From Piromyces finnis finn (taxonomy: Eukaryota; Fungi; Neocallimastigomycota), in assembly GCA_002104945.1 (NCBI GenBank), contig MCFH01000036.1, positions 503,929-567,928 on the forward strand: DNA of 64,000 nt, written 5' to 3'. Both the position numbers and the translations under genes were made by a program. How positions within the stretch are numbered: position 1 is the stretch's first letter; each line of letters opens with the position of its first letter. The notes under the pieces were generated by a model. That model was given only the letters and a program-made list of their open reading frames with translations, was not told where the DNA came from and did not search any database. Positions 9,301 through 63,928 of this stretch are shown here, piece by piece.

Positions 9301-11940
9301 ATGGTATTCCAATTGAATTTTACAAAGCATTAATTCCATCAAGTAATGATTCTAATAATGCTACAGATAATAATTCTTCCGGTAATACCACTTCAGATAA
9401 TGATGCTCATGGTTTAAATTTTATTCTTAAATTATTCAACCGTATTTGGGATGGAGACTTCCCCAACTCATGGAATGAATCCAGTATTGTTTCTATTCCT
9501 AAGAAGGGAGATTTGACAGATTGTGATAAATATCGAGGTATATCACTTATCAATAATGGCATTAAGTTGATTTCCAAAATTGTCACCACTAGAATCTCAG
9601 AATATGGTCTAAAGAATAATTTCATTAGACCTGAACAATTTGGTTTTCGAAAAAAGGAAGAAAGTATCAGTCTTTTCATTTCAATCCAAGAAATATGCCG
9701 TAGACGTCAATTAGATAATAAAGAGACATATTTGGCCTTTTTAGATCTCAGGAAAGCATACGATTCAGTCCCAATCGGTAATATTCTCCATAAATTAGAT
9801 TGTTTAGGAATCCGAGGGTAAGAGTTTACAATTTATCAAAAATTTATATTTAACATCTAAGGCTAATGTCAAATTAGATGGACAATTCTCGAAATCTTTT
9901 GATGTGAAGAAAGGAGTCCGTCAAGGATGCCCTCTTTCTCCTATTCTCTTTAATCTCTTTATTAATGATATATTTAAAGAGTGCGAAGATCTTGGAGTCA
10001 GTTTAGGTGACACTCGATGCTGTGGTGGACTTTTTGCAGATGATATAGTTATTTGTGCTCCAACAAGAGGATGCTTAAAAAAGATGCTTAGAAGAGTTAA
10101 TGAATGGGCCTTGTATAATGAAATGGAATTTGGTATCCAGAAATGTTCAACGATGGTGATTCGTCCTGAATCAATAGAAAATCAGATCAAGAGAGATCCA
10201 ACATTTTACTTAGCAGGACAACCCATTCCAACTACTGATTGTTATACTTATCTTGGTGTTCCATTTGATAAGAATCTGTCCCTTAAACCAGTAATTAAAG
10301 CTCTTAATAACAAGGTTTTGAAAGGACTTTTTTCAGTCAGTAAATTCTTAAGAAATCCTAATATTCCTATTCCCTTCAAAAAGCTAGTACTTAACTCACA
10401 AGTGATTAGCAGAGTTTCATACTTTGCACCATTACTTGGATCCAACAAAGCTAGGTCTAGAATTGCTCAGAAGCATGTTAACAAAGGAATACGATGGGTT
10501 GCCGGAGTTCATAAAGCTGTATCGTTTATATCTTTATACTCTATCTCAAAAGATTTGAATATTCCTCCATTGTCAGCCAAATGTGCATTAGCTCAGGTTA
10601 GATGTTTTAACAAATGGAAAAACTCAAATTGTATTATCTCACACCTTGTCAATTACATTCCTAAATTTAGAAAATACACGTGGTGCAAATCAAGTAGGAC
10701 ACTTGATAAAAAATTAAAGAAACATGGAGATGTTAAAGCAGTTAAAAACTTTTATTGGAAAGATCTCAAAGGAAATTCAATCAAAGCGCAATATTATGAT
10801 GATAATAAATTTATTGAAACTAAAGATTTTATTAAATTATGTTATGAGTACCCAGAGTTTGCCTATGGCTTCTACTGGCTCTTGAAAGCAAGAAGCGGAT
10901 ACAAGTTGGATGCTAGAGTTGCCAAAGCTGCTAAATTTGTTGATCCAGTTTGTCCTAACTACTGTCCATGTTGCAAGTGTGGTGTTCAAAGTATTAAACA
11001 TTGGTTATTAGATTGTCCAACATTTAGAGATATCCGTATTAAACATTATGATTCCATAGTCCAGCTACTAAATTTTTTCAGTCAACGTAATTCCAATAGT
11101 CCTATCAATAATAATGAAAATGTTAATATCAGTAGAGATAGCAATAACATTAATAGTAATAGTAACAATAGTAGTAATAACAATAGTAATAGTAACAATA
11201 GTAATAATAACAATAGTAGTAATAGAAATAGTAATAATAACAATAGTAGTAATAGAAATAATAATATTAGTAATGATAGCTATAGTGAAGATAATAATTC
11301 TAATTTAGATAGTAATTTAGTTAATGATAGTAATAGTTCTAATAATCCGGTGAATATTAATGTGTATGATTATTCTAGTGTGTGCAGTAAAATATTTAAA
11401 TTCCTTCTTGGGGGAAGAAGTTTTAACAATATTAATTACAATTCAAGGGAATGGAAAGAACTTTGTAAGCGTCAGATTCAATCTGGTACTAATGAAGGAG
11501 CACCATTCTTGACGGTAACCGCGGAACTTCTAACCAAAATCATGCCTTTTGCTATTGGCCAGCAATGGTCAATGTTCAAAAGGTTTGAAGCAACATCCAA
11601 GAGCGTCAATGCTGAAGAAACAGTAAGACAGGCCAGGAGGGCCAGCGCAACCAATGGAGATCATAATTTTGTTCCATGACAAATTTTTGATCTTTGGCTC
11701 GGTGTCCCATTGGAAGTCAAATACAATTATTATACTTTAGTATGATAGTGGCTTTCTTACTTTAATTAAAATTACTAGAATACATTATACCCAATTTTTA
11801 TTCATTTGTGTTTATTTAAACATATTTTTTTTTATTTTTATTTTAATTTTAATTTTTTTATTACATATATTATAATTTTAATTAAATTAATAATAAAGTT
11901 TAAAATATTTGATGCCGTTAAAAAAAAAAAAAAAAAAAAA
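6370..11940 (+). mobile_element. Full-length non-LTR retrotransposon (LINE), copy 1
   Basis: Starts CCCTCTTGGG, 764-nt 5' UTR, EN-RT coding region, 240-nt 3' UTR ending GATGCCGTT plus A21, flanked by a 13-bp TSD. Confidence 0.97.
7134..11679 (+). pseudogene. LINE copy 1 polyprotein (RRM-like, APE, RT, CCHC) split by a +1 frameshift
   Basis: ORFs 7134-9821 and 9904-11679 are collinear with the intact copy-3 ORF. Copy 1 reads CGAGGGTAAG at ~9812-9821 where copies 2 and 3 read CGAGGTAAG (one extra G). Real mutation or homopolymer error. Confidence 0.9.
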
Positions 11941-12513
11941 TGTCAAAATATATAATAGAGTTTAATGAAATGTATATATAAAAAACATTTATGGAGAAAA
12001 GTTATATGTAAGTAATGGTTTATTACCATATTAAAATATATTTATTTTTGATAGTTTCTGATATTTAAACCATTTTAATTAAGGAATATATAAATATATA
12101 AGTATATATATCTAAGATAATTAATGAAAAAGAAAATAAATAAATAATAATGATTCATAAATCAATTAAAAGCATTATTCCTCATTATTATAAATGAAAT
12201 TATTTAATATTTTAAAATAATGTAATATTCGTATTAAGATTATTCAAAAAAGTATACATTTATTATAAAATGCTGTAAGATATTGTAAGATATCATTATT
12301 ATAAAGGATCAGCATATAAAATATTAGTAAATATTCTGCTAAATTATCGGTTTTTAAAGATGGTCTGGCATGATTTCAATGATTTTTATTGTCTTTCTTG
12401 GTAAAAATTTAAAAATTCTTTTTAAAAAAAAAAATTCTACAAATTGGTGGAAAAATTAATAAAAAAAATTTTTTAAAAAAATTTTTTTCTATAGAAAAAT
12501 CGACATTTAAAAA

Positions 12514-12994: not shown

Positions 12995-13639
12995 ATGTCT
13001 TTATTCTTTTTAAATGATCCAATTCGTGAAAGTGACCGTTCTATCTTAAATAATTCTATCTTGGATGATAACAAGTGTGATTTATCTGATGATGGTAATA
13101 ATTATTCTCATTCTTTCACTTCCGCTGTTTTCCCTGGTTTCTTCTTTGGTTATCCTCCTTATGCTTATCCTACTCAACTTCATTCTAATGCCATCACCAC
13201 TGCTAAACCAAATACAAAAGCTACCGCCGGTAAATCAAATACAAAATCTAGTGTTAAAGGACAATCATCCTACCGTCCATTTGATAAAGATGTTTATAAA
13301 TTAGTTGATTTCCGTCCAAAGAATAATTTATGTGAAGATGAAAAGAATTATTATATTCAAATTGATTTACCAGGGATGAGTAAAGAACAAATTCATATGG
13401 AACTAACAGAAGATAATATTATTAGTATTTCAGGAGAAAGAGCAAAGAAAAATAATGTTGAAGGAATGAAATATTCAAAAATGGAATGTGAATATGGTAA
13501 ATTTTCAAGATCCTTTAGTATTCCTGAAACAGGAGATATTGAAAAGATTGAAGCTAAAATGGAAAATGGAGTATTAGAAGTTATTATTCCTAAAATTTCA
13601 ATACCAAAAACTCAACGTCGTACAATTTTAGTACAATAA
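12995..13639 (+). CDS. hsp20: Small heat-shock protein, copy B
   Basis: 214 aa, near-identical to copy A. Confidence 0.95.
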   Translation: MSLFFLNDPIRESDRSILNNSILDDNKCDLSDDGNNYSHSFTSAVFPGFFFGYPPYAYPTQLHSNAITTAKPNTKATAGKSNTKSSVKGQSSYRPFDKDVYKLVDFRPKNNLCEDEKNYYIQIDLPGMSKEQIHMELTEDNIISISGERAKKNNVEGMKYSKMECEYGKFSRSFSIPETGDIEKIEAKMENGVLEVIIPKISIPKTQRRTILVQ

Positions 13640-18797: not shown

Positions 18798-19442
18798 TTA
18801 TTGTACTAGAATTGTACGACGTTGAGTTTTTGGTATTGAAATTTTAGGAATAATAACTTCTAATACTCCATTTTCCATTTTAGCTTCAATCTTTTCAATA
18901 TCTCCTGTTTCAGGAATACTAAAGGATCTTGAAAATTTACCATATTCACATTCCATTTTTGAATATTTCATTCCTTCAACATTATTTTTCTTTGCTCTTT
19001 CTCCTGAAATACTAATAATATTATCTTCTGATAATTCCATATGAATTTGTTCTTTACTCATTCCTGGTAAATCAATTTGAATATAGTAATTCTTTTCATC
19101 TTCGCATAAATTATTCTTTGGACGGAAATCAACTAATTTATAAACATCTTTATCAAATGGATGATAGGATGATTGTCCTTTAACACTAGATTTTGTATTT
19201 GATTTACCGGCGGTAGTTTTTGTATTTGGTTTAGCAGTGGTGGCGGCATTAGAATGAAGATGAGTAGGATAAGCATAAGGAGGATAACCAAAGAAGAAAC
19301 CAGGGAAAGCAGCGGAAGTGAAAGAATGAGAATAATCTTCACCGTCATCAGATAAATCACACTTGTTATCATCCAAGATAGAATTATTTAAGATAGAACG
19401 GTCACTTTCACGAATTGGATCATTTAAAAAGAATAAAGACAT
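18798..19442 (-). CDS. hsp20: Small heat-shock protein, copy C
   Basis: 214 aa, same motifs as copy A. Confidence 0.95.
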   Translation of the reverse strand: MSLFFLNDPIRESDRSILNNSILDDNKCDLSDDGEDYSHSFTSAAFPGFFFGYPPYAYPTHLHSNAATTAKPNTKTTAGKSNTKSSVKGQSSYHPFDKDVYKLVDFRPKNNLCEDEKNYYIQIDLPGMSKEQIHMELSEDNIISISGERAKKNNVEGMKYSKMECEYGKFSRSFSIPETGDIEKIEAKMENGVLEVIIPKISIPKTQRRTILVQ

Positions 19443-21363: not shown

Positions 21364-22008
21364 TTATTGTACTAAAATTGTACGACGTTGAGTTTTTGGT
21401 ATTGAAATTTTAGGAATAATAACTTCTAATACTCCATTTTCCATTTTAGCTTCAATCTTTTCAATATCTCCTGTTTCAGGAATACTAAAGGATCTCGAAA
21501 ATTTACCATATTCACATTCCATTTTTGAATATTTCATTCCTTCAACATTATTTTTCTTTGCTCTTTCTCCTGAAATACTAATAATATTATCTTCTGTTAG
21601 TTCCATATGAATTTGTTCTTTACTCATCCCTGGTAAATCAATTTGAATATAATAATTCTTTTCATCTTCACATAAATTATTCTTTGGACGGAAATCAACT
21701 AATTTATAAACATCTTTATCAAATGGATGATAGGATGATTGTCCTTTAACACTAGATTTTGTATTTGATTTACCGGCGGTAGTTTTTGTATTTGGTTTAG
21801 CAGTGGTGGCGGCATTAGAATGAAGATGAGTAGGATAAGCATAAGGAGGATAACCAAAGAAGAAACCAGGGAAAGCAGCGGAAGTGAAAGAATGAGAATA
21901 ATCTTCACCGTCATCAGATAAATCACACTTGTTATCATCCAAGATAGAATTATTTAAGATAGAACGGTCACTTTCACGAATTGGATCATTTAAAAAGAAT
22001 AAAGACAT
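21364..22008 (-). CDS. hsp20: Small heat-shock protein, copy D
   Basis: 214 aa; tandem with copy C at a 2566-bp offset. Confidence 0.95.
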   Translation of the reverse strand: MSLFFLNDPIRESDRSILNNSILDDNKCDLSDDGEDYSHSFTSAAFPGFFFGYPPYAYPTHLHSNAATTAKPNTKTTAGKSNTKSSVKGQSSYHPFDKDVYKLVDFRPKNNLCEDEKNYYIQIDLPGMSKEQIHMELTEDNIISISGERAKKNNVEGMKYSKMECEYGKFSRSFSIPETGDIEKIEAKMENGVLEVIIPKISIPKTQRRTILVQ

Positions 22009-31298: not shown

Positions 31299-31943
31299 TT
31301 ATTGTACTAGAATTGTACGACGTTGAGTTTTTGGTATTGAAATTTTAGGAATAATAACTTCTAATACTCCATTTTCCATTTTGGCTTCAATCTTTTCAAT
31401 ATCTCCTGTTTCAGGAATACTAAAGGATCTTGAAAATTTACCATATTCACATTCCATTTTTGAATATTTCATTCCTTCAACATTATTTTTCTTTGCTCTT
31501 TCTCCTGAAATACTAATAATATTATCTTCTGATAATTCCATATGAATTTGTTCTTTACTCATTCCTGGTAAATCAATTTGAATATAGTAATTCTTTTCAT
31601 CTTCACATAAGTTATTCTTTGGACGGAAATCAACTAATTTATAAACATCTTTATCAAATGGATGATAGGATGATTGTCCTTTAACACTAGATTTTGTATT
31701 TGATTTACCGGCGGTAGCTTTTGTATTTGGTTTAGCAGTGGTGGTGGCATTAGAATGAAGATGAGTAGGATAAGCATAAGGAGGATAACCAAAGAAGAAA
31801 CCAGGGAAAGCAGCGGAAGTGAAAGGATGAGAATAGTCTTCACCGTCATCAGATAAATCACACTTGTTATCATCCAAGATAGAATTATTTAAGATAGAAC
31901 GGTCACTTTCACGAATTGGATCATTTAAAAAGAATAAAGACAT
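31299..31943 (-). CDS. hsp20: Small heat-shock protein, copy F
   Basis: 214 aa, same motifs. Confidence 0.95.
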   Translation of the reverse strand: MSLFFLNDPIRESDRSILNNSILDDNKCDLSDDGEDYSHPFTSAAFPGFFFGYPPYAYPTHLHSNATTTAKPNTKATAGKSNTKSSVKGQSSYHPFDKDVYKLVDFRPKNNLCEDEKNYYIQIDLPGMSKEQIHMELSEDNIISISGERAKKNNVEGMKYSKMECEYGKFSRSFSIPETGDIEKIEAKMENGVLEVIIPKISIPKTQRRTILVQ

Positions 31944-33448: not shown

Positions 33449-34093
33449 ATGTCTTTATTCTTTTTAAATGATCCAATTCGTGAAAGTGACCGTTCTATCT
33501 TAAATAATTCTATCTTGGATGATAACAAGTGTGATTTATCTGATGACGGTAATAATTATTCTCATCCTTTCACTTCCGCTGCTTTCCCTGGTTTCTTCTT
33601 TGGTTATCCTCCTTATGCTTATCCTACTCAACTTCATTCTAATGCCACCACCATTGCTAAACCAAATACAAAAGCTACCGCCGGTAAATCAAATACAAAA
33701 TCTAGTGTTAAAGGACAATCATCCTATCATCCATTTGATAAAGATGTTTATAAATTAGTTGATTTCCGTCCAAAGAATAACTTATGTGAAGATGAAAAGA
33801 ATTACTATATTCAAATTGATTTACCAGGAATGAGTAAAGAACAAATTCATATGGAATTATCAGAAGATAATATTATTAGTATTTCAGGAGAAAGAGCAAA
33901 GAAAAATAATGTTGAAGGAATGAAATATTCAAAAATGGAATGTGAATATGGTAAATTTTCAAGATCCTTTAGTATTCCTGAAACAGGAGATATTGAAAAG
34001 ATTGAAGCCAAAATGGAAAATGGAGTATTAGAAGTTATTATTCCTAAAATTTCAATACCAAAAACTCAACGTCGTACAATTCTAGTACAATAA
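33449..34093 (+). CDS. hsp20: Small heat-shock protein, copy G
   Basis: 214 aa, same motifs. Confidence 0.95.
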   Translation: MSLFFLNDPIRESDRSILNNSILDDNKCDLSDDGNNYSHPFTSAAFPGFFFGYPPYAYPTQLHSNATTIAKPNTKATAGKSNTKSSVKGQSSYHPFDKDVYKLVDFRPKNNLCEDEKNYYIQIDLPGMSKEQIHMELSEDNIISISGERAKKNNVEGMKYSKMECEYGKFSRSFSIPETGDIEKIEAKMENGVLEVIIPKISIPKTQRRTILVQ

Positions 34094-37057: not shown

Positions 37058-40000
37058 ATGGTTCTGAATGAATTACATAATTGGAATAAGTAAGTATGAA
37101 TGTATAAATTGTTTATTAATGCTATATATATATTTTAAAATAAAATAAAAAATTATAATTTATTTATTTATTATTTTTTTTAATAAAGAATCAATGATAC
37201 TTGTAAATTTATAGTTAATAACCCAGACATTGGTATTATTAATATTTAAAAAATATAAAAATAATATTAAGTAAAATAAATTATATACATTATATTTTAT
37301 TTAATTATTATTTTTTGAAATAACAATTAATTATATTTTTATATGTTACTAATGATATAGATTCAATATATATTGAGATGAATGGATTAATTAGCGATAC
37401 ATTACATTATTCTGGAAAGGCTATGGATACATATATATATGATGAAAGAGAATTCGCAAATATTGTTTTTGATAAAATTAACAATATTGTTAATAAATTG
37501 AAACCTAAAAAGTTTTTAGGTATATTTTTCGATGGAGTTTCCCCAAAGGCTAAGATGAATTTACAAAGACAACGTCATATACGTGAATACTATAAATATA
37601 CTAACCAATATTCTTTAAAATATAATTCAATTTCTATTGGAACTGAATTTATGAAAACACTTTCTGATATAATTGAAGAAAAAATAAAAGAGATAAAAAT
37701 TAAGAAAGATTTATCTTGGAAAAAAATCAAAGTTATTTTTTCAGGACCTAATGTAGTTGGCGAGGCAGAATATAAAATACTTGATTATATAAAACGAAAT
37801 AAAACAGCAAATTCCAATAATGGATGTTATTACGAAAGAGGATGTATCTACTCTTCCAATAATAATTTTTATTTACTTTTGTTAGCTAATCATCAATATA
37901 CCTTTTCAATATATAATGAGTCCAATAATATGAACAGCAAATCAAGAAATAAAATTTTCTTTTCGATAAAAAGGTTTCGTCAGGCTATTTTAGATATGTT
38001 GTTTCCAAATTCAAATAAGGAAGATCACGACAGAATTATTGATGATTTTATTTGTCTAAGCTTTTTATCAGAAAATAACTGCTTACCTGGAGTTTATGAT
38101 GTTCTTTTTGATGATATTATTGATGTATATAGAGAAAATTACAAAACATTTGGATTTATTAATGACAAAGGAAATTTAAAGGAAGAAAATCTTAAAATGT
38201 ATTTAATTGAATTGAAAAATAAAATTAATTTTATTAATAAATTAATTTATTATTTTGATAATAAATTAAATAAAAAAGAAGATGATACATCAAATAATGA
38301 TAATGATATATATCATGATAATAAGGATAATAATTATATCGTTAAATTTGGTATGATTATAAATATTAAAGAATAGGAATAGAAATACACCTAGAGTAAT
38401 AATTAATAAAAATTAATTATTTATATAATATATTGTTAATACTAGATTTTGTAGATAATTATATTATTAAAAGGAATATCCTTTCTGATGTCTTAAGTTT
38501 CATAAATGACTCAAATTCAAAATCAATAGCTATTAATTATAAAGATCCGATTTCCATCAAATATCTAGAATTTATTTGTTCTAAATTTAACTTAGAATGT
38601 CATGTAGGAAAGTATCAAATCAAAATTATCGATTATGTTAATCAAAGAAAAACACATGATATTAATGAATTTGAGAATTATTGTAAGCAAAATAATTTAA
38701 ATATTAATGACCTTAAAAATTTAAGCAAAGAAAGTGCTTATGAAATCAAATCACACTGTAAAAACTTAAATATTAATTTTATGGAAACAATTTATTCAGC
38801 TATTTCAAAAAATCCAGAAAATGATTATTCTCATATTATGGTGCAAATTAAATTAGAAATTGATTATAGGCATAATCTTTTCTTAAAGAAAAAGAAACAT
38901 TATTATAAGGTTATAATTAAAAATCAATAAATTTCTTTTTTTTTACAATAGATAATATAAATGTAGTAGCTTATATAACATTTTTTATATTATTGCCTTT
39001 TTATATAATTATTAATATATGAATTTAAAGAAAAATATTCCAAATTGTAATAAAAAAGAATTAGTTAATCAATATATTGAAGGTATTAAATGGATGCTTA
39101 AAACCCATTATGATAAAATTCCATCGTGGAGCTGGTATTACAAATATCGTTGCTGGAAAAATGATTGCAATAGTTATGGTCCTTTTATTTCTGGTATTTG
39201 TTAATGTGTTAAATCATTATGATTATAATTTGTATTTTCTTTAATAAATTTCATTAAACATACCAATAATCAATAATACTAATACATATGTATTTTAAGA
39301 TCTTTGTGAATTTCAAGAAAATCCGGATTTTAAATTTTCACAAGATGAACCTCTTAGCCCATTTATTAATTTATTAATAATTTTACCATTTGAAAGTTTT
39401 AGTTTACTTCCAAGTTCTTATAGAAAGGTATATCTATATTATATTATTATTATTATTATTATTTTTATATAATAAATATTAAATATAACTATAACAATAA
39501 AAAAAGTTTTTGAATTCAGAAGAGTTACAAAAATTATATCCAAAAATAGATAGTTTTCCAGATAAAAGCTCAATGTTTAAAAGTCTTTCATCGCTTCCAC
39601 TTTTTGATGCGACCATTTATAATGAAAAAATTAAAGGTATTATTAAAGTATAAAATGAATAGAAGTAATAATATTTTTATTAAAGAAAATTAATTATTAA
39701 TATTAGAATTAAATGACTCTCTTACAAATGAAGAAAAAGCAAGAAATAGTTTTGGTTCAAATAAAGAATATCATTATTACAAGTATTTTTTTTATAATAT
39801 TTCATAATTTTATATAATTAAATAATTAAAATTCTAAATTAATTTATGTTATTTATTCTTATAACAACAATAATAATATTTATTTAAATAGCGATATAAT
39901 TCAACTCAGTATAAATAGTCAGATTGAGAAATTAATTGAAGATAAAGATTATAAAAGTGCTCTCAATAAAATAAATAATTTAGTAATTATTTTCTCCTTA

Positions 40001-43000
40001 TTAAATAATATATTTTATATTTATTATTATTTAATAAAATTAATGTATAATTATCATTTAATATTAAAATATAATACTTTTAATTTTTTTGTTTATATAT
40101 TAATATTAACAAAAGATAAAAATAAATCCTAGTACAGATAATCTTTGTTGTCGTGCAAATATATATCTAAAAATGTATAAACATAAAGATGCAATGAATG
40201 AATGTAAGAAAGTACTTGAAAAAAATAATAAATGTATCTCAGCTATTTTAATTCTTGCAAAATGTAACAAACGCTATGGCTATATCAATGATGCGAAGGA
40301 AAATATTAAGAGAGGATTAGAGGTATCCAAAGAAAATATCCATTTAGCGAATCACATTCCGACTTTAGAAAATGAAGTAAATAATAAATCTAAATATTAT
40401 TCATTAAATATGAATTTGATAAAACTTAGATTTATATTTTATTTGTATAGAAACTATAATAATAAATTTTTTTAAAATTAATATTTACTTTAATATTATA
40501 CTATAAATAAATAGTTAAATAATATTTATGAAATAGAAAATTCAGTTAGTGAAGTAGACCATTTAATAAGAGAAGAAAAGTATAATGAAGCACTTGTAAA
40601 GTTAGAAAATGTAATGTTAAAATATGATATGGAACTTAATTCAATCATCCCATCCAATAATACATTAAGTATTTTAAAGAGTGATGAATTATGGAAAATT
40701 CCAATTAAATGGAGATTGTTAAGGGCTGAGCTATTACTTATGAATAATGATTATTATGAAGCATTGAACGCTGTTGAAATTTTACTTGATTCAAATAAAC
40801 CTTTTAAAAATTCTGAAGCTTTAACATTAAAATATAAATTATTATATATTATGGGTAAAAGTAATATGAAGGAAACGTTTGATGGTTTTCGTGAAGCCAT
40901 TAGTATTTTTAAAGGAAATAATAGAGCAAAAGTACTAATGAAAAAAATTCCCGAATTTGAAGAAAGAAAACAAAACATTCATGATGATTTTTTTGCAAAA
41001 GGAAAGTATGAAGAAGCTATCCAACAATATGATACATTAATAAGAGAACAAAAAGAAATTTATTTAAATGGAATAGGACGAGCTATTTTATTAAGAAATA
41101 AATGTACATGCTTATTGATGGTATTAAAAGAAATAATATTTATTAATTTACTCTTTTTTTTCTTTAAAGTTTATACAACTTTGTAAAATTTTAAAATATA
41201 TAACTAATATATTATAAATCTTTATTATTCTTTAATTATCAATGAAATTAAAAGTTAAGTAAATATCAAGAATGTATTAATAATGCTAGTGCAGCTATTG
41301 AAATATTAAATCATATTGTATTTTTAGAAGGAAAACCAAAAAGCATTAAAGATTATCAAGATTGTAATCAACATTCAATTTTCTTTGAGCTTTTTAAAAA
41401 AAGATCAGAAAGTTATATGAAAATCGAAGAATTCCGAAATGCAAGAGAAGACTATGAAATTTTAAAAATAATGAAGCCATATGATAAAAGTATATTAATA
41501 GAAAAATCATTTTAATAGATATTAATAAATTAAATACTATAATTTATTTATTTTCAAGTAATATATATTTAAATTTATCCTCTCTCTTTTTTGTTTTTCT
41601 TTATATAATATCAAATTAGAATTCAGATTTGAAGAATTATACGTAAGAATGGATAAGTAAATATTTTTCTGTGAATTATATATTAGTTATATTATAAAAA
41701 AAAAATAAATAATAATTTATTTATTTATTAAAAAAAAAATGATAGAGCTCTTATTTCTGAAGATAAAAAGGAGGAAGGAAATAAATTTTTCAAAAATGGA
41801 AACTATGAGGATGCATTAAAATATTATAATGATTCATTAGGTATAGTTAATATTCTTATACTATTATTACAATTATAATAGAAAACTTATTAAAATTGAT
41901 TTTACCTTTATAAAACAATAGAATTAAATTGGAGGAATAGTAAATCTCATTTTAATAAAGGATTACTATATATGAAACTTTTAAAATATAGTGAGGCTAT
42001 CAGAAGTTTTAAAAATGCATATAAATGGAATAATAAATATTATAAAGCTATTATTAATATTTCAAAATGTTACCTTCAAATGCTTCAACCAGGAAATTCC
42101 ATAAATGAGCTTCGTAAATTGAATATTAATAGCGATAACGAATTTTATATGGAATATAATAAGAAAGTAAATATATTTCTAATTTTATTTTATTTTTAGA
42201 AATTTCTATTTATTATAGTGTCATAGCATCATAGCACTAATATGAGCGATTGATTTTCTAATATTTATTTATTTTTGTATATTAAAAATTTTATAGTTAA
42301 ATTCCTCGAAAATAATTAATCAAATTTTTAATAGAATTAAATTCAGCAAGAAAATAACGGATTATAATGAACTTTTAGAATCCTACAAAAATGCTGATTT
42401 ATCTGGCTACTGTGAAGTTCTTATTCTCAAAAAACAAATTGAAATTTTAATCGTAAGTAGTTTATTTTCTTTTATATAATGAATCATATTTTTATTTTTT
42501 TTTATTAAAAAAAAAAAAAAAAAAGTAAAATTAAAATATATATCTTTTTTTTATTAAAAAATTTTATCTGACAATAATATTTTATTTCTCTAGAAAAATA
42601 AATCTTACGATGATGGTTTTACCTATTGTACAAAAGCTATTAATATATTGAATAATATATTGAATAATAATGATCAAGAATATAATTCAGAGACTCCACA
42701 TAAAGATATGTACGAAAATTTATTGAATAGTAGAATAAAATGCTCCAAAAATTTAAGAAAATATAATGATATTGTTTCTGATTATGAAATATTAATAAAA
42801 TTAGATATTGAAAATGGTAAAAGTATGTATATTTAAATAATTAATGAATAAAAAGTATATATAAAATTATATAGTTAAAATATTTATTACTTTATACTAC
42901 CAATAGATTCTAAAAAAGTAAATTATCATAAAGAAATAGCTGAAGCAAAAGAAAATGCAGAAAAGTAAATTTATTGTATAAATAATAATATATTTTAGAA

Positions 43001-44440
43001 AATCCTATTTAACTATAAAAAAATCATCATAACAAATTTAAGAAATAAATAATTTTATTAATATTAGTTTTTTTTATTTTAAAACTATTTTTTTATTTTT
43101 CATAAAATAAGGCTAAAACGGGCGGAAGAGTTAAGAAGTGAAGGAGTAAAAGTGTATAATAATAAAGACTATAAAAAAGCTAATCTTTTATTCACACTAG
43201 CTATTTGTACAGTATACCTTTAAATACTAATAAAATTACTTTATTAAAATACTAAAAACGATTCAATTTTTTAAAATTATAGATGCATGTCCATTTCCAA
43301 ACCCTACATATTATCATAATAGAGCAGCGACAAATATGATGATGTATATATATGAAGATGCAATTGATGATTGTATGAAAGCTCTAAATTATGATGAAAA
43401 ATACGTTTCTGTTTATAAAAAAATAGCAACTTGTTGTTTCCAACTAAACAAGCCAGATAATGCTATAAATATTCTTAAACAAGGAATTGCCTCATGCCCT
43501 ACAGATGATGAATTGAAAGAAAAAGTAACTTTTTTTTTTTTAAAAAAAAATACTAAAATAATTATATTCATACTACAACAACTACTACCACTACTATTAC
43601 TAATAATAATACATTTTCTTTCGTATATATTAATATATATTAGTTAAAGCAGGCTAAAATATTAAGCAATACAAAAAAGTCTATTAATAATACTTCATAT
43701 AAAAAGACTAAAATTAGATTATATAAGCAATTACTGAAAAAATATAATGACTATGGTATATTAGGATATGTTGATGTTTTAATATATAAAGAAATTTCAT
43801 TGAATTATAGAAATGTAAGTATTAAACATGAAAGTTATACTAATAAAAAAATAAAAATAGGAAAAAATAAAAGTATAAGTTTAATAATGGTGATTATTAT
43901 TTATTATTCATTATCTATTTAAAAAATTTATAGATAAATAATGTAGATGAATGCATTTCCAATATTACAAATTCTATAAACATATTATCAATATTATTAT
44001 GTAAAAGCGAAAAAGTTTCAGCTGAAACATATAAACAATCTTCTAAATGTCAATTATTTATTGAACTTTTTACTATTAGAACCAAAGCTTTAGTTTCTGG
44101 TAAATATTATGTTGATGCCCTTAACGATTGTTTCTGTTTACATACTATGGATCCAGATAATAATGGTAAATTGTTTCTTTTTTTTTTTTTTTTTTTTGTT
44201 TTGTTCTAAATAATTAAATAATTATACTAACTTTTTTTTTTTTTCCTTTTTTTTCTGAAAATACTTGTAAAACTATATATTAAACTTTTAGAAACTGAAA
44301 GATTGTTAATAGATTTACTTCGTATGAATGATTCATATCCACCCAGACAATACAGACGTTTTAAATTTAATGATACATCATTTAATAAGTCATCATATTA
44401 TAATAATTTCTCGAATAATAATTCATCAAATAATAATAGC

Positions 44441-44538
<98 letters not shown>

Positions 44539-45148
44539 CAACAACAACAACAACAATAATAATTCGTCATCATCACATAATTATGAATATAAAAAATCAA
44601 GCAAGAAATATAACAAATTAAGTAATTATGAAATTCTTGGTTTAAATCAAAGTAATAAACCTTCTCTAAAAGAAATTAAAAATGCATATCATAAACTTGC
44701 ACTTAAATATCATCCAGACAAATGTAAAGATAAATTTATGAAAGAAGAATACGAAGAAAAAATGAAAGAAATTAATATTGCTTATGATGAATTAAAGAAA
44801 AATCATAGCAATGAAAATAATGAAAGTAATGATGATGACTATTCTTATAATAAGAATACTTCTAAAGATGCCTATAATGACTATGATGATAATAAATATA
44901 ATAATTACACTTATAATGACTATGATGACGATGAAGATGATGTTGACAATAATTATAATTACACTTATTATGATTATGATGACGATGAAGATGATGTTGA
45001 CAATAATTATAATTACACTTATTATGATTATGATGACGATGAAGATGATGATAATGATACTTATAATAATAATAAATATAATGCATATGATGATGATGAT
45101 GATGATGATTCTATTAATGATTTTTATTATTATTCTAATTTCTTTTAA
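37058..45148 (+). CDS. 23-exon XRN-like pseudo-exoribonuclease, TPR array and DnaJ-domain fusion protein (~1,870 aa estimated)
   Basis: Hand-spliced GT-AG exons stay in frame throughout, e.g. 37058-37089, 37189-37232, 37361-38349, 38446-38909, 39031-, 40116-40376, 40515-41120, 41255-41489 ... 44292-45148. XRN motifs YIEMNG, DGVSPKAKMNLQRQR, IGTEFM, GEAEYKILDYI, DDFICL, YIEGIKW, PSWSWYY, LTNEEKARN. TPR motifs such as KEEGNKFFKNGNYEDALKYY and YYHNRAA. J-domain NYEILG..YHKLALKYHPDK..MKEINIAYDEL. Confidence 0.85.
44433..44562 (+). repeat. (AAT/AAC)n poly-Asn tract in the last exon, just before the J-domain
   Basis: Read directly; in frame in ORF 44303-45148. Confidence 0.9.
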
Positions 45149-46681: not shown

Positions 46682-49600
46682 GGCATCAAATATTTTAAAC
46701 TTTATTATTAATTTAATTAAAATTATAATACATGTAATAAAAAAATTAAAAATAAAAATAAAAATAAAAAAAAATATGTTTAATTAAACACAAATGAATA
46801 AAAATTGGGTATAATGTATTCTAGTAATTTTAATTAAAGTAAGAAAGCCACTATCATACTAAAGTATAATAATTGTATTTGACTTCCAATGGGACACCGA
46901 GCCAAAGATCAAAATTTTGTCATGGAACAAAATTATGATCTCCATTGGTTGCGCTGGCCCTCCTGGCCTGTCTTACTGTTTCTTCAGCATTGACGCTCTT
47001 GGATGTTGCTTCAAACCTTTTGAACATTGACCATTGCTGGCCAATAGCAAAAGGCATGATTTTGGTTAGAAGTTCCGCGGTTACCGTCAAGAATGGTGTT
47101 CCTTCGTTAGTACCAGATTGAATCTGACGCTTACAAAGTTCTTTCCATTCCCTTGAATTGTAATTGATATTGTTAAAACTTCTTCCCCCAAGAAGGAATT
47201 TAAATATTTTACTGCACACACTAGAATAATCATACACATTAATATTCACCGGATTATTAGAACTATTACTATCATTAACTAAATTACTATCTAAATTAGA
47301 ATTATTATCTTCACTATTGCTATCATTACTAATATTATTATTTCTATTACTACTATTGTTATTATTACTATTGTTACTATTACTATTGTTATTACTACTA
47401 TTGTTACTATTACTATTAATATTATTACTATCTCTACTGATATTATCAATTTCATTATTATTGATAGGACTATTGGAATTACGTTGACTGAAAAAATTTA
47501 ATAGCTGGACTATGGAATCATAATGTTTAATACGGATATCTCTAAATGTTGGACAATCTAATAACCAATGTTTAATACTTTGATCTCCACACTTGCAACA
47601 TGGACAGTAGTTAGGACAAACTGGATCAACAAATTTGGCAGCTTTGGCAACTCTAGCATCCAACTTGTATCCGCTTCTTGCTTTCAATAGCCAGTAGAAG
47701 CCATAGGCAAACTCTGGGTATTCATAACATAATTTAATAAAATCTTTAGTTTCAATAAATTTATTATCATCATAATATTGCGCTTTGATTGAATTCCTTT
47801 TGAGATCTTTCCAATAAAAGTTTTTAACTGCTTTAACATCTCCATGTTTCTTTAGTTTTTTATCAAGTGTCCTACTTGATTTGCACCACGTGTATTTTCT
47901 AAATTTAGGAATGTAATTGACAAGGTGTGAGATAATACAATTTGAGTTTTTCCATTTGTTAAAACATCTAACCTGAGCTAATGCACATTTGGCTGACAAT
48001 GGAGGAATATTCAAATCTTTTGAGATAGAGTATAAAGATATAAACGATACAGCTTTATGAACTCCGGCAACCCATCGTAATCCTTTGTTAACATGCTTCT
48101 GAGCAATCCTAGACCTGGCTTTGTTGGATCCAAGTAATGGTGCAAAGTATGAAACTCTGCTAATCACTTGTGAGTTAAGTACTAGTTTTTTGAAAGGAAT
48201 AGGAATATTAGGATTTCTTAAGAATTTACTGACTGAAAAAAGTCCTTTCAAAACCTTGTTATTAAGAGCTTTAATAACTGGTTTAAGGGACAGATTCTTA
48301 TCAAATGGAACACCAAGATAAGTATAGCAATCAGTAGTTGGAATGGGTTGTCCTGCTAAGTAAAATGTTGGATCTCTCTTGTTCTGATTTTCTATTGATT
48401 CAGGACGAATCACCATCGTTGAACATTTCTGGATACCAAATTCCATTTCATTATACAAGGCCCATTCATTAACTCTTCTAAGCATCTTTTTTAAGCATCC
48501 TCTTGTTGGAGCACAAATAACTATATCATCTGCAAAAAGTCCACCACAGCATCGAGTGTCACCTAAACTGACTCCTAGATCTTCGCACTCTCTAAATATA
48601 TCATTAATAAAGAGATTAAAGAGAATAGGAGAAAGAGGGCAACCTTGACGGACTCCTTTCTTCACATCAAAAGATTTCGAGAATTGTCCATCTAATTTGA
48701 CATTAGCCTTAGATGTTAAATATAAATTTTTGATGAATTGTAAACTCTTACCTCGGATTCCTAAACAATCTAATTTATGGAGAATATTACCGATTGGGAC
48801 TGAATCGTATGCTTTCCTGAGATCTAAAAAGGCCAAATATGTCTCTTTATTATCTAATTGACGTCTACGGCATATTTCTTGGATTGAAATGAAAAGACTA
48901 ATACTTTCTTCCTTTTTTCGAAAACCAAATTGTTCAGGTCTAATGAAATTATTCTTTAAACCATATTCTGAGATTCTAGTGGTGACAATTTTGGAAATCA
49001 ACTTAATACCATTATTGATAAGTGATATACCTCGATAGTTATCACAATCTGTCAAATCTCCCTTCTTAGGAATAGAAACAATACTGGATTCATTCCAAGA
49101 GCTGGGGAAATCTCCATCCCAAATACGGTTAAATAATTTAAGAATAAAATTTAAACCATGAGCATCATTATCTGAAGTAGTATTACCAGAAGAATTATTA
49201 TCTGTAGCATTATTAGAATCATTACTTGATGGAATTAATGCTTTGTAAAATTCAATTGGAATACCATCCGGACCTGATGCTTTATAATTTGGAGTAGAGA
49301 GGATAGCTGACTTGACTTCATCAATACTAATATCTTGGTTGATATCCCACTCATCAAGCATAGGAAGTGAAAAACGTTTATTCGTTGGTTCTTCATACCA
49401 ATGCTCCAAATCAAGACTTACACCACTTGGGTCTGATGCAAGATTTTCGAAATGATCATGCCACACATCTAGTTGTTCTTCCGTAGCAACAACTAATTCT
49501 CCATTTTTATTTTTAATTGGTTGAGCAATAAAGAAAGAATCTTTTCCAATTTTTGCAGTTTTCTTGATCCATTTCCAGGCCTTCTTAGGATTATGACTCT

Positions 49601-49937
49601 TCATATACTCACATCCTGTTTTAATCCAATGAAGATATTCTTGCTTCCTAAATTCATTACATCTTTTGTGGATGTAATCAATGAGTTTACGGTAGATTTT
49701 AATTCTTTTAATAAATTCATCTATATCATAAATTCTTTCTTTTTTAAATCTCTTATACAACTTCATTTTGATTTTTTGGAGATTAAAAATTTGTTGTGAA
49801 ATATGAAATGAAGACTTTATAACATTATTTGCTGAGGTAATACTGAGCTCGTCTGCAATTGAAAAAGCAGTTGAAGTAAATTCTTTGGAAAGTTCATCTG
49901 TAGAAACATTAGGATCGTTGGATTTTGCTGAAAGTAT
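46642..49937 (-). mobile_element. 5'-truncated LINE, copy 2
   Basis: A37 tail (T run 46642-46678) and the same 3' UTR as the other copies. RT and CCHC are intact; the element is truncated at ILSAK just after the endonuclease domain; TSD present. Confidence 0.96.
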
Positions 49938-50518
49938 AAAAAATAATATAAATTTATAAATAATCATACCTTTAACCAATTAACAATACTATTATATTAT
50001 TGTATATATATTTTTAATATATATTATGATATGACAAACTCTAATAATAATAATAATAATTACAATAATAATAATACAATAGTAAAAAAAAAATAGTATA
50101 TAATTATGAATAAACTTTATTGTTTTATTTTTTAATATAATAATGAAGTTTTTGTTAATATTTTATAATGGATTATTTAATAATATTTTACATTTATCGT
50201 TTTTTAAATATTTATATATTTTTTGATATTTTTAATTAATATATGCTTATTTTTATATGTATTATTTTTATAGTTAATATATATCTTTAATATTTTTTTT
50301 TTCTATTTTATAATTTTTAATTTCTATTAGTAAGTAAATATAAATTTATTTATATTTATATTACTTTTGATTCCTTAATTTAATGTTATGAAATCTTAAT
50401 TTTTCATTATGTATGTAATAAAAAATTAAATATCTCATTTTTAATTAATAATTTTCTTTTTCTTTTTTTTCTTCCTAAAAACACAATTATAATTATGTTT
50501 ATAATATTTTTAACATTC

Positions 50519-58411: not shown

Positions 58412-61400
58412 TTTTTTTTTTTTTTTTTAACGGCATCAAATATTTTAAACTTTATTATTAATTTAATTAAAATTATAATACATGTAATAAAAAAAATTAA
58501 AAATAAAAATAAAAATAAAAAAAATATGTTTAAATAAGCACAAATGAATAAAAATTGGGTATAATGTATTCTAGTAATTTTAATTAAAGTAAGAAAGCCA
58601 CTATCATACTAAAGTATAATAATTGTATTTGACTTCCAATGGGACACCGAGCCAAAGATCAAAATTTTGTCATGGAACAAAATTATGATCTCCATTGGTT
58701 GCGCTGGCCCTCCTGGCCTGTCTTACTGTTTCTTCAGCATTGACGCTCTTGGATGTTGCTTCAAACCTTTTGAACATTGACCATTGCTGGCCAATAGCAA
58801 AAGGCATGATTTTGGTTAGAAGTTCCGCGGTTACCGTCAAGAATGGTGTTCCTTCGTTAGTACCAGATTGAATCTGACGCTTACAAAGTTCTTTCCATTC
58901 CCTTGAATTGTAATTAATATTGTTAAAACTTCTTCCCCCAAGAAGGAATTTAAATATTTTACTGCACACACTAGAATAATCATACACATTAATATTCACC
59001 GGATTATTAGAACTATTACTATCATCAACTAAATTACTATCTAAATTAGAATTATTATCTTCACTATTGCTATCATTACTAATATTATTATTTCTATTAT
59101 TGTTATTATTACTATTGTTATTATTAATATTATTACTATTACTATTACTGTTATTGCTATCTCTGCTGATATTAACATTTTCATTATTATTGATAGGACT
59201 ATTGGAATTACGTTGACTGAAAAAATTTAATAGATGGACTATAGAATCATAATGTTTAATACGGATATCTCTAAATGTTGGACAATCTAATAACCAATGT
59301 TTAATACTTTGAACACCACACTTGCAACATGGACAGTAGTTAGGACAAACTGGATCAACAAATTTAGCAGCTTTGGCAACTCTAGCATCCAACTTGTATC
59401 CGCTTCTTGCTTTCAATAGCCAGTAGAAGCCATAGGCAAACTCTGGGTATTCATAACATAATTTAATAAAATCTTTAGTTTCAATAAACTTATTATCATC
59501 ATAATATTGCGCTTTGATTGAATTCCCTTTGAGATCTTTCCAATAAAAGTTTTTAACTGCTTTAACATCTCCATGTTTCTTTAGTTTTTTATCAAGTGTC
59601 CCACTTGATTTGCACCACGTGTATTTTCTAAATTTAGGAATGTAATTGACAAGGTGTGAGATAATACAATTTGAGTTTTTCCATTTGTTAAAACATCTAA
59701 CCTGAGCTAACGCACATTTGGCTGACAATGGAGGAACATTCAAATCTTTTGAGATAGAGTATAAAGATATAAACGATACAGCTTTATGAACTCCGGCAAC
59801 CCATCGTATTCTTTTGTTAACATGCTTCTGAGCAATTCTAGACCTGGCTTTGTTGGATCCAAGTAATGGTGCAAAGTATGAAACTCTGCTAATCACTTGT
59901 GAGTTAAGTACTAGTTTTTTGAAAGGAATAGGAATATTAGGATTTCTTAAGAATTTACTGACTGAGAAAAGCCCTTTCAAAACCTTGTTATTAAAAGCTT
60001 TAATAACTGGTTTAAGGGACAGATTCTTATCAAATGGAACACCAAGATAAGTATAGCAATCAGTAGTTGGAATGGGTTGTCCTGCTAAGTAAAATGTTGG
60101 ATCTCTCTTGTTCTGATTTTCTATTGATTCAGGACGAATCACCATCGTTGAACATTTCTGGATACCAAATTCCATTTCATTATACAAGGCCCATTCATTA
60201 ACTCTTCTAAGCATCTTTTTTAAGCATCCTCTTGTTGGAGCACAAATAACTATATCATCTGCAAAAAGTCCACTACAGCATCGAGTGTCACCTAAACTGA
60301 CTCCTAGATCTTCGCACTCTTTAAAAATATCATTAATAAAGAGATTAAAAAGAATAGGCGAAAGTGGGCAACCTTGACGGACTCCTTTCTTCACATCAAA
60401 AGATTTCGAGAATTGTCCATCTAATTTGACATTAGCCTTAGATGTTAAATATAAATTTTTGATAAATTGTAGACTCTTACCTCGGATTCCTAAACAATCT
60501 AATTTATGGAGAATATTACCGATTGGGACTGAATCGTATGCTTTCCTGAGATCTAAAAAGGCCAAATATGTCTCTTTATTATCTAATTGACGTCTACGGC
60601 ATATTTCTTGGATTGAAATGAAAAGACTAATACTTTCTTCCTTTTTTCGAAAACCAAATTGTTCAGGTCTAATGAAATTATTCTTTAAACCATATTCTGA
60701 GATTCTAGTGGTGACAATTTTGGAAATCAACTTAATACCATTATTGATAAGTGATATACCTCGATAGTTATCACAATCTGTCAAATCTCCCTTCTTAGGA
60801 ATAGAAACAATACTGGATTCATTCCATGAGTTGGGGAAATCTCCATCCCAAATACGGTTGAATAATTTAAGAATAAAATTTAAACCATGAGCATCATTAT
60901 CTGAAGTAGTATTACCAGAAGAATTATTATCTGTAGCATTATTAGAATCATTACTTGATGGAATTAATGCTTTGTAAAATTCAATTGGAATACCATCCGG
61001 ACCTGATGCTTTATAATTTGGAGTAGTGAGGATAGCTGACTTGACTTCATCAATACTAATATCTTGGTTGATATCCCACTCATCAAGCATAGGAAGTGAA
61101 AAACGTTTATTCGTTGGTTCTTCATACCAATGCTCCAAATCAAGACTTACACCACTTGGGTCTGATGCAAGATTTTCGAAATGATCATGCCACACATCTA
61201 GTTGTTCTTCCGTAGCAACAACTAATTCTCCATTTTTATTTTTAATTGGTTGAGCAATAAAGAAAGAATCTTTTCCAATTTTTGCAGTTTTCTTGATCCA
61301 TTTCCAGGCCTTCTTAGGATTATGACTCTTCATATACTCACATCCTGTTTTAATCCAATGAAGATATTCTTGCTTCCTAAATTCATTACATCTTTTGTGG

Positions 61401-63928
61401 ATGTAATCAATGAGTTTACGGTAGATTTTAATTCTTTTAATAAATTCATCTATATCATAAATTCTTTCTTTTTTAAATCTCTTATACAACTTCATTTTGA
61501 TTTTTTGGAGATTAAAAATTTGTTGTGAAATATGAAATGAAGACTTTATAACATTATTTGCTGAGGTAATACTGAGCTCGTCTGCAATTGAAAAAGCAGT
61601 TGAAGTAAACTCTTTGGAAAGTTCATCTGTAGAAACATTAGGATCGTTGAATTTTGCTGAAAGAATTTGGAATTTATTATGACTAAGAATAGATTCCTTT
61701 TCCTCAATACATTTTAATCTATTCCATTTCAGAATTTTCTTAGGAACATTAAAGTCATTAGAAAAATCTTCCATAGGAATAATTTTACCATTAATAAGAA
61801 GTGGCTTATGGTCTGATACAGGATAAAAATTATTTATAAATGATCCTGAGTGAATAAGATCTTTCATCTTCGAATTGATAAGAGCATGGTCAATGTCGGA
61901 AGATTGATCACCTCGAGTCCAAGAGATAGTCGACCCTCTAAGCGGAAGAATTTCCCAATCTCCTAATCCATTAGTTGATAACCAGTTGGATAATTTTACT
62001 TTAGACATATTAAAATCACCAACAAGAATCGATGGATGGGATGAATGAGTTTGTAACCACAAGCGAGCTTCTAACTTTGCATGATCAACATAGATGTTGT
62101 GATGACTATGAGGCATATAAACATTTCCAATCGAGCATTTGAATCTATTCCAGAGACTAAAAGTATAAATAGAAATAATATACTTTCCAGAGAAGTTTTC
62201 AAGTGAGGCTTGACATGAATTGTGAAAACCTAAATATAAACCTCTCATTCCCGGAACTGATTCGTCAGCTTTCTTGAAAAAGTGTCTATAGTTTCGCAAA
62301 GTAACACGACAAGGATAATCTGTATTCGATCCAGAACCATTACCAGTTTCTTGGAAACATAAGAATAATGGTTTGAAAATAGCTGTGAAATAGCTAATAC
62401 TATCTCTCTTTTCGTGATTCCACCCATTGGTGTTCCAACTAAGACAAAAAGAAAAGTTATCAGGCTTGTTGGATGAGGAAGAATCGTTGCTATTATTATT
62501 ATTATTAAAGTCATCGTTATTAATGGATGATGCATCAGAGGAATAAGTAGAACTATTACTAGATGGCTGTGAAACTGAAGAACTATCAACTATTGAACTG
62601 TTATCAGAGTTGATAGAGCTATTAGAATTAAATGTTGAATGTTGAGATTGAAATTGTGTTTGCTGTAGATCTGGAATATTTTCATGATTGGAAACTTGTT
62701 GAAGATCTTGTTGAAGATCTAGTTGAAGATCGGATTGTTGATGAGATTGTTGAACTGATTGTTGAAATGATTGTTGAATAGAATGTTGATGTTTATTAGA
62801 AACTAAAATTTTACGTTTGAGAGTGGAAAAAGTGTATTTGTGATTCCTTCTACTACGAGCTGAAAAGGAAATTGAGGTAACTGAAAGTTTCTTCTTTAAC
62901 ATGTGTAAGATTTTAATACAATCTTTCGATGAACCATGAACCTTGACTAAGAAAAAGTGATCATTGAAAGTCTGAAAATATTTAACACTAATAACTGAAT
63001 TAAATTTATCTTCTAGAATAACCTCGAGTTTTTCCCATAGCATATTTACTGACCATGATCGAATACCACGGATAAAGAAGGAGCGAATATCATCTAAGGG
63101 GATACCATAAGACCGGGTACCACGTCTAATATAATTCTTGTCTTTAATATAAAGGACTGACATGATAATAAATTCTAATTAAAAATATTGAATATAAAAT
63201 AAATACTAATAAAAATTATAAATATAACGTATATGGAAAAAAAATCTGTCTCTCTCTCTCTTCTTAAAAGTACTGGATAGTACAAAAATTGTTACGATGC
63301 TTTGTTTAAAGTTTCTTTTTTTGAATTCTAGTTGTAAATTTTCTTTAAAAATTCTAGTTTTGGTTTGTTGTTAGTAAATTCGAATCGCTTTTTGACACTA
63401 AACTTGTTTGACTTTACTTTTCATTAAATATTTAAATTGGTAAAAAATTTGAATCAAGAATGTCGACACCAGAAAGCTTGTGACTAGTATTTTTACATGA
63501 TGTAGAGTGAATCAGTCTCTTACAAGAAACAATACAACAATAGCTACATGAATATAAAAATACAATGCAAATGCTAAAGTTGACTACATTGGATTCTTAC
63601 AAGAGAAGAGTAGTACTACATGAATACATGAATAAAAGAAAAAAATACAGCAACAAAATGTATTACTCTTCTAATTAAATACTATACAAACTTACCTGAA
63701 TATCAAACATTCAACTTATTCATCAAATACTTAATTCGATGAATAAAATGTTTTTTAATCGCTCAGTACCATGAGCTTAGTCCTAATAATTTTCCCTTAA
63801 AGACTAACCAAGCATCCATTGCGCAATGCTTGGATTTAATTCTTTCTACTCTCTCAGTACCATGAGCATGAGTAGACCCCCTTGATAAACTCCATTATTA
63901 AATAAATGAAGGCACGTTCCTAAGAGGG
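58412..63928 (-). mobile_element. Full-length LINE, copy 3 (intact)
   Basis: A17 tail; 5' end CCCTCTTAGG matches the start of copy 1; uninterrupted ORF. No TSD could be identified. Confidence 0.97.
58670..63163 (-). CDS. LINE polyprotein, 1497 aa: RRM-like, Q/S/N linker, APE endonuclease, RT, CCHC knuckle, Asn-rich insert, C-terminal domain
   Basis: EN: WNTNG, FQET, GNVY, GDFN, IDH, SDH. RT: YRGISL, QFGFR, LDLRKAYDSV, RQGCPLSPILFN, FADD, YLG. Knuckle: CPCCKCGVQSIKHWLLDC. Confidence 0.96.
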   Translation of the reverse strand: MSVLYIKDKNYIRRGTRSYGIPLDDIRSFFIRGIRSWSVNMLWEKLEVILEDKFNSVISVKYFQTFNDHFFLVKVHGSSKDCIKILHMLKKKLSVTSISFSARSRRNHKYTFSTLKRKILVSNKHQHSIQQSFQQSVQQSHQQSDLQLDLQQDLQQVSNHENIPDLQQTQFQSQHSTFNSNSSINSDNSSIVDSSSVSQPSSNSSTYSSDASSINNDDFNNNNNSNDSSSSNKPDNFSFCLSWNTNGWNHEKRDSISYFTAIFKPLFLCFQETGNGSGSNTDYPCRVTLRNYRHFFKKADESVPGMRGLYLGFHNSCQASLENFSGKYIISIYTFSLWNRFKCSIGNVYMPHSHHNIYVDHAKLEARLWLQTHSSHPSILVGDFNMSKVKLSNWLSTNGLGDWEILPLRGSTISWTRGDQSSDIDHALINSKMKDLIHSGSFINNFYPVSDHKPLLINGKIIPMEDFSNDFNVPKKILKWNRLKCIEEKESILSHNKFQILSAKFNDPNVSTDELSKEFTSTAFSIADELSITSANNVIKSSFHISQQIFNLQKIKMKLYKRFKKERIYDIDEFIKRIKIYRKLIDYIHKRCNEFRKQEYLHWIKTGCEYMKSHNPKKAWKWIKKTAKIGKDSFFIAQPIKNKNGELVVATEEQLDVWHDHFENLASDPSGVSLDLEHWYEEPTNKRFSLPMLDEWDINQDISIDEVKSAILTTPNYKASGPDGIPIEFYKALIPSSNDSNNATDNNSSGNTTSDNDAHGLNFILKLFNRIWDGDFPNSWNESSIVSIPKKGDLTDCDNYRGISLINNGIKLISKIVTTRISEYGLKNNFIRPEQFGFRKKEESISLFISIQEICRRRQLDNKETYLAFLDLRKAYDSVPIGNILHKLDCLGIRGKSLQFIKNLYLTSKANVKLDGQFSKSFDVKKGVRQGCPLSPILFNLFINDIFKECEDLGVSLGDTRCCSGLFADDIVICAPTRGCLKKMLRRVNEWALYNEMEFGIQKCSTMVIRPESIENQNKRDPTFYLAGQPIPTTDCYTYLGVPFDKNLSLKPVIKAFNNKVLKGLFSVSKFLRNPNIPIPFKKLVLNSQVISRVSYFAPLLGSNKARSRIAQKHVNKRIRWVAGVHKAVSFISLYSISKDLNVPPLSAKCALAQVRCFNKWKNSNCIISHLVNYIPKFRKYTWCKSSGTLDKKLKKHGDVKAVKNFYWKDLKGNSIKAQYYDDNKFIETKDFIKLCYEYPEFAYGFYWLLKARSGYKLDARVAKAAKFVDPVCPNYCPCCKCGVQSIKHWLLDCPTFRDIRIKHYDSIVHLLNFFSQRNSNSPINNNENVNISRDSNNSNSNSNNINNNNSNNNNNRNNNISNDSNSEDNNSNLDSNLVDDSNSSNNPVNINVYDYSSVCSKIFKFLLGGRSFNNINYNSREWKELCKRQIQSGTNEGTPFLTVTAELLTKIMPFAIGQQWSMFKRFEATSKSVNAEETVRQARRASATNGDHNFVP

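Follow-up and report, generated by a model that had tools for sequence, protein, structure and literature searches.

A gene of the gut fungus Piromyces finnis raises the question of what an XRN-type nuclease domain becomes once four of its seven catalytic acids have been replaced: a module kept for something other than catalysis, a passenger in decay, or an enzyme that still cuts. XRN enzymes rank among the most conserved RNA-decay enzymes. Two catalytic Mg2+ ions are held by seven acidic residues, D35, D86, E176, E178, D206, D208 and D291 (PMC9512700). Activity of Xrn1 is abolished by D206A and by D208A (PMC11088878), as a preliminary description of the locus had also stated. The 5'-phosphate pocket of Xrn1 is formed by K93, Q97, R100 and R101; its E178Q variant is inactive and its H41A variant still degrades 5'-P RNA (PMC8850482). 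In the literature we found no paper that describes an XRN pseudo-nuclease of the kind reported here, deals with XRN in Neocallimastigomycota or mentions a fusion of XRN with TPR and J-domains.

The gene, hereafter the window copy, lies on contig MCFH01000036.1 of assembly GCA_002104945.1, within a stretch of 64,000 nucleotides that was analysed as a whole and is called the window. From the letters of this stretch, the preliminary description had proposed a selected pseudo-nuclease that binds or senses 5'-monophosphate RNA rather than degrading it. Here we place the domain in its gene, compare it with canonical XRNs and with its own relatives, and weigh this proposal against other readings of the same substitutions.

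Results

Structure of the gene and its surroundings

The window copy is a spliced gene that carries an XRN-type fold, a TPR array and a C-terminal J-domain in one frame. Ten exons between 37058 and 40400, separated by canonical GT-AG introns, encode 801 stop-free residues running from the N-terminus through the XRN core to the first TPR repeat; all features of the gene given below are on the forward strand. Exon 1 (37058..37089) holds the start codon and the onset of the protein, MVLNELHNWN-, and ends on a GT donor with an in-frame join. This N-terminus matches the annotated one of the paralog P0005 (MVFRELTSWKN), and the family-specific sequence stands in place of the canonical MGVPKFFRW helix. 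Exon 2 (INDTCKFIVNNPDI; 37189..37232) was assigned from its AG/GT signals and frame, and similar upstream exons are present in the loci L002 and L005. Exon 3 (990 nt; 37361..38350), in which the altered motifs sit, encodes the XRN_N catalytic domain (CR1) and the start of the helical domain. It is followed by a family-specific insert of ~150 aa between CR1 and CR2, encoded by exon 4 (38446..38909, with an alternative in-frame acceptor at 38455) and 38-43% identical in L001, L002 and L005; this insert had no credible match in Pfam and no usable match in a Protein Atlas search. Exon 5 (39031..39193) encodes CR2 with its PSWSW tryptophans and a family-specific insertion, RCWKNDCNS. The remaining XRN core is attributed to exons 6-8 (39300..39782) from a weak XRN_M match, homology to L001, L002 and L005 and in-frame GT-AG joins. 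The TPR array (39892..44250) is spread over many exons with TPR_1/TPR_2 matches and, through the exon 8-9-10 joins, is in frame with the XRN core. The last exon (44303..45148) holds the J-domain (Pfam DnaJ, PF00226, E=1.5e-13, 51 bits against a cut-off of 27.8), with its HPD motif at 44711-44719.

The public annotation gives the window copy as a single gene with an 1847-aa product starting at 37378. That start omits the two short 5' exons (37058-37232) coding for the conserved family N-terminus MVxxELxxW. The ten in-frame spliced exons, the annotated product and a crude dN/dS below 1 bear out the earlier view that the gene is open. As an indirect sign of a spliced transcript, three presumed-RNA runs from two further studies contain 0.63, 0.55 and 0.52 of all 31-mers between 37000 and 40000, against 0.62 expected under the exon model if every intron is removed.

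With a GC content of 13-32%, the window is extremely AT-rich; besides the window copy it contains LINE elements, a gene for PEPCK and several for HSP20. Six HSP20 ORFs of 214 aa lie on both strands within 30 kb (4951-5595, 12995-13639, 18798-19442, 21364-22008, 31299-31943 and 33449-34093); two of them were found in the protein collection, in the same 90%-identity cluster. This local array adjoins the chaperone-linked window copy. Three LINE-type elements, each with endonuclease and reverse transcriptase ORFs (7134-11679, 46920-49979 and 58670-63163), correspond to the GC-richer blocks of the window.

XRN identity, active site and phosphate pocket

The XRN assignment rests on both halves of the core. 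Exon 3 matches XRN_N in Pfam at 126.1 bits against a cut-off of 22.9 (E=2e-36) and XRN1/XRN2 chains of the PDB at E about 1e-26, and exon 5 matches XRN_M at 35.3 bits against a cut-off of 23.8 (E=8.4e-9). An AlphaFold2 model of exon 3 alone reached a pLDDT of 80.9 and a pTM of 0.77; when submitted to Foldseek, its best 27 matches were all XRN1/XRN2, with TM values of 0.68-0.76.

The window segment 37363-38373 was aligned by HMMER with K. lactis Xrn1 (3pie), C. elegans XRN2 (5fir) and human XRN1 (9e70). The alignment is unambiguous and pairs YSSNNNF with YGLDADL, ENNCLP with GNDFLP and YIEMNGLIS with YLDMNSILH, the D35 and H41 assignments being confirmed by chain numbering in the structure alignment. 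The substitutions that had been read by eye (DxD to N-N-N, GNDF to ENNC, D35E and H41S) were all recovered in this way, and the codon positions given for the two asparagines at DxD (37858 and 37864) and for the one in the GND motif (38077) are exact. Glutamate occupies the D35 position (37375..37377) and serine the H41 position (37393..37395). D86 (37531..37533) and E176/E178, in the triplet E-A-E (37762..37770), are retained, as previously noted, both in the structure-based alignment and in that with canonical XRNs. The DxD motif reads AAT AAT AAT (37858..37866), and the GNDF motif has become E-N-N-C (38071..38082). Three of the seven metal-binding acids (D86, E176 and E178) are thus unchanged and four are altered (D35E, D206N, D208N and D291N); the alignment revealed no compensating acid beside the altered motifs. 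Of the His41/Trp540 stacking pair, the histidine is replaced by serine and the tryptophan is present, in line with the earlier remark that the PSWSW tryptophan is kept; it lies in exon 5, within the XRN_M match. The phosphate pocket (KMNLQRQRH, 37552..37578) had been described as kept. This is so for K93, Q97 and R100 but not for R101, which is a histidine in the window copy (37576-37578) and had been overlooked, so that three of the four pocket residues are left.

At the DNA level, the loss of DxD amounts to three G-to-A transitions in nine bases when compared with GAT AGT GAT in the relatives. D291N is also a single G-to-A transition, and this is the direction favoured by the AT bias of the P. 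finnis genome.

A family of XRN-like proteins in gut fungi

A word search gave eight close relatives, P0001-P0008, at 51-58% identity. The named ones come from P. finnis (P0005) and Anaeromyces robustus (P0008, a fragment); the rest are from metagenome or run assemblies. P0005 is a paralog of the window copy and not an ortholog, because its gene lies on another contig, MCFH01000003.1, of the same assembly. The succession XRN, TPR and DnaJ is common to this P. finnis contig (L001) and to two metagenome contigs (L002 and L005). A sample of canonical XRNs was obtained by a profile search over 1.84 billion representatives, yielding 182 aligned rows. Family members scored 480-540 bits and single-domain canonical XRNs at most 173 bits; P0011, a tandem-duplicated canonical XRN, reached 251 bits summed over three stretches. 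The family is monophyletic (100/100) in a maximum-likelihood tree, its stem measuring 2.7 changes per site, and the profile search detected it only in anaerobic gut fungi. The most AT-biased long match, P0067, was considered as a canonical Xrn1 from an anaerobic fungus and rejected, being a budding-yeast-type Xrn1; no cluster name among the other profile matches came from anaerobic fungi. Scanning metagenome loci with the family profile returned distant canonical XRNs only (24-32% identity).

The window copy carries the full signature of this family: H41S, G289E, D291N, the MVxxELxxW N-terminus and XRN, TPR and DnaJ in one locus. Among the family sequences covering these positions, H41 is replaced by Ser (9/9, the window copy included), G289 by Glu or Arg and D291 by Asn; F292 is Tyr in the relatives. 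The corresponding residues are close to invariant in the canonical rows covering them (H41 in 100/100, D291 in 145/146, as are D206 and D208 in 148/148 each and R101 in 147/147; D86, E176 and E178 are invariant as well), and H41S, G289E and D291N are essentially absent from about 146 canonical XRNs. Conserved across genera, these three family-wide changes are therefore under selection. The six other acids and the whole phosphate pocket are otherwise kept in the family, despite AT pressure. By sequence, the active site is non-canonical in every member, with the Asp of GNDF changed to Asn, His41 to Ser and the N-terminal helix replaced; as a whole, the family may well still be able to bind both metal and RNA, and even activity is possible.

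The remaining changes behave differently. The preliminary description had named conservation of the Asn substitutions in orthologs as a check, and at DxD they are not conserved: the motif is D-S-D in 8/8 relatives and D-N-D in the second tandem copy on L002, so that aspartates are kept in 9/9, the P. finnis paralog P0005 among them. Because all nine keep D-x-D, its loss is specific to the window paralog. Asp35 (6/6 relatives reaching the position) and Arg101 are likewise kept by every relative covering them. D206N, S207N, D208N, R101H, D35E and the Tyr-to-Cys change after ENN are thus private to the window copy. Relatives with intact acids, which had been named beforehand as evidence against a selected pseudo-nuclease, therefore exist for D206, D208 and D35. 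The closest relative of the window copy is at 58% identity, none nearer being available for dating the loss of DxD.

Two family sequences deserve separate mention. The metagenome contig L002 has two XRN-like/TPR/J genes in tandem. The second (10387-12213), starting ~2.5 kb downstream of the first, reads T-D-N-D-F at DxD and has a frame change between GEAEYK and DxD, from either a frameshift or an assembly error. P0012, a divergent family fragment of 155 aa, ends in IYIYTNYSD where relatives read CIYTTDSD, and may be another member in which the first Asp of DxD is replaced. An exact look-up of this fragment found no entry, nor did those of the PEPCK ORF and the exon 3 ORF of the window.

The second P. 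finnis copy (copy B; P0005, L001) keeps DxD. Its exon 5, with a SWTW motif, is split by an insert of 556 bp (L001:12127-12682), a retroposon with 40% GC, a tail of 17 A and a 10-bp target-site duplication (TTTATTAAAG); ~50 bp of its sequence correspond to the 3' ends of the LINE elements found in the window. In the public annotation the XRN gene of copy B ends inside the insert, and the TPR/J part is a separate gene. Neither P. finnis copy in assembly GCA_002104945.1 combines an intact frame with DxD. The AU test did not reject a Piromyces-specific duplication as the origin of the window copy and copy B (p=0.27).

Selective constraint on the XRN domain

We counted private changes at columns that are invariant in the relatives. 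The window copy has changed at 16/87 of them, compared to 7/78 for copy B and 23/449 for the others pooled (p=1e-4). Its rate of private change is nearly the same at invariant (18.4%) and variable (19.9%) columns, in contrast to invariant/variable ratios of 0.18-0.41 in relatives. These changes are not enriched in the active-site motifs (8/40 inside vs 8/47 outside, p=0.79), and on this ground we abandoned the idea that the active site had been remodelled in a targeted way. The excess over the whole domain looks like a shifted or relaxed constraint rather than a targeted redesign, and its even spread would fit a general relaxation as well as a new function.

Substitution rates give a different impression. 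Pairwise dN/dS of exon 3 is 0.29-0.36 in pairs that include the window copy vs 0.34-0.48 in other pairs. On the terminal branch of the window copy, dN (0.139) and dN/dS (0.24) are both the lowest of the three group II branches (window copy, copy B and L002), and the other terminal branches have dN/dS of 0.33-0.43; these branch values are crude, coming from a least-squares fit on five sequences with dS near saturation. Neutral accumulation of the private changes at conserved columns would have brought with it about 5.5 nonsense mutations in exon 3, whereas the exon contains none (P about 0.004). Similarity to relatives is about the same for the XRN exons as for the TPR exons. A plain pseudogene is rejected by the integrity of the frame across ten exons, the absence of nonsense mutations and a dN/dS below 1. 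Selection for the open frame could nevertheless stem solely from the downstream TPR/J-domain part.

Discussion

Comparison with known systems

The window copy shares with Xrn1/Xrn2 (Rat1; Pfam PF03159 and PF17846) the fold and the order CR1-linker-CR2, with TM values of 0.70-0.76 for the CR1 model, as well as D86, E176, E178, K93, Q97, R100 and the SWxW tryptophans. It departs from them in that only three of seven acids are unchanged, H41 is Ser, R101 is His and the MGVPxFF helix is replaced, and in that it carries the insert of ~150 aa and an insertion after SWSW. Where Xrn1/Xrn2 have C-terminal domains of their own, the window copy has a TPR array and a J-domain. This half of the protein resembles the co-chaperones DNAJC7 (Tpr2) and DNAJC3 (p58IPK), in which a TPR array is also followed by a C-terminal J-domain with HPD; to our knowledge, co-chaperones of this type contain no nuclease-like domain. 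The likeness to the family members P0001-P0008 is closest, extending to the exon layout, the order XRN-TPR-DnaJ, the N-terminus and H41S/G289E/D291N. These nevertheless differ from the window copy in having D-S-D (D-N-D in the second L002 copy), D35, R101 and a Tyr after ENN.

A probable paralog-specific pseudo-nuclease and its rivals

We consider it probable, at roughly 60%, that the XRN domain of the window copy is a pseudo-nuclease peculiar to this paralog, retained without catalytic function within a TPR/J-domain co-chaperone. Of the two P. finnis paralogs, it alone has lost both Asp residues of DxD, together with the changes of R101 to His and D35 to Glu, and two-metal phosphodiester hydrolysis should then be impossible for it, judging from what is established for Xrn1. 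The window copy is no decaying pseudogene, since it has maintained its reading frame, its splice signals, its fold and an overall dN/dS below 1. The proposal of a selected pseudo-nuclease thus stands in part. D291N, H41S and G289E are conserved in the family and the frame has been kept, but the loss of DxD is private and the excess of private changes extends over the whole domain. The DxD part of the dead signature is confined to one paralog of one species, so it is not readable as a conserved, selected design.

The most serious competitor, which we hold to be possible though clearly the less probable account, is that the XRN domain has been drifting by missense changes under AT pressure since the duplication, its frame being protected only by selection on the TPR/J part. 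Several observations favour this account: the three changes at DxD and D291N are all single G-to-A transitions, private changes strike invariant and variable columns at nearly equal rates (18.4% and 19.9%) without concentrating in the active site, and a pocket residue, R101, has gone too, at the same time as the HPD of the J-domain is intact. The terminal-branch estimates speak against it, crude as they are, with dN and dN/dS the lowest of group II and not raised; so do the alike identities of XRN and TPR exons to relatives, the conservative nature of many private changes (F/L, F/Y, K/R, C/S) and the confidence of the fold model.

That the domain might instead still be a nuclease, acting through E35, D86, E176 and E178 with, for instance, one metal ion or another substrate, seems improbable to us. 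Four carboxylates, three pocket residues and the stacking Trp would be left for it, and the conservation of six of seven acids by the family despite AT pressure suggests that metal binding matters. Yet either D206A or D208A on its own abolishes Xrn1 activity (PMC11088878), both residues are invariant in 148/148 canonical XRNs, and there is no compensating acid next to the DxD motif. Least of all do we expect the altered motif to be an assembly or sequencing error, or the gene to be an unexpressed pseudogene. The genome does hold retroposon-hit copies of the XRN-like/TPR/J family, but the motif change in the window copy is accompanied by several independent substitutions elsewhere in exon 3, neither stop nor frameshift occurs over ten exons, an 1847-aa product is annotated, and the three presumed-RNA runs from two further studies hold about the share of 31-mers expected from exons only.

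Possible role and significance

That the window copy binds or senses 5'-monophosphate RNA ends is possible but speculative, and its pocket is only three-quarters intact. A broader scheme, which we regard as unlikely, starts from the D291N and H41S changes conserved in the family and from its intact phosphate pocket: the whole family would not degrade RNA but recognize 5'-monophosphate ends and recruit Hsp70, by way of the J-domain and TPRs, to RNPs that have been decapped or cleaved or to stalled ribosomes. The window copy, lacking DxD as well, would then be the form of this adaptor in which catalysis is wholly lost. A eukaryotic lineage in which an XRN fold with a remodelled active site is fused to a co-chaperone module for Hsp70 would naturally connect the recognition of RNA 5' ends with protein quality control, and the two P. 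finnis paralogs, one having lost DxD and the other having kept it, offer a ready comparison of binding versus cutting.
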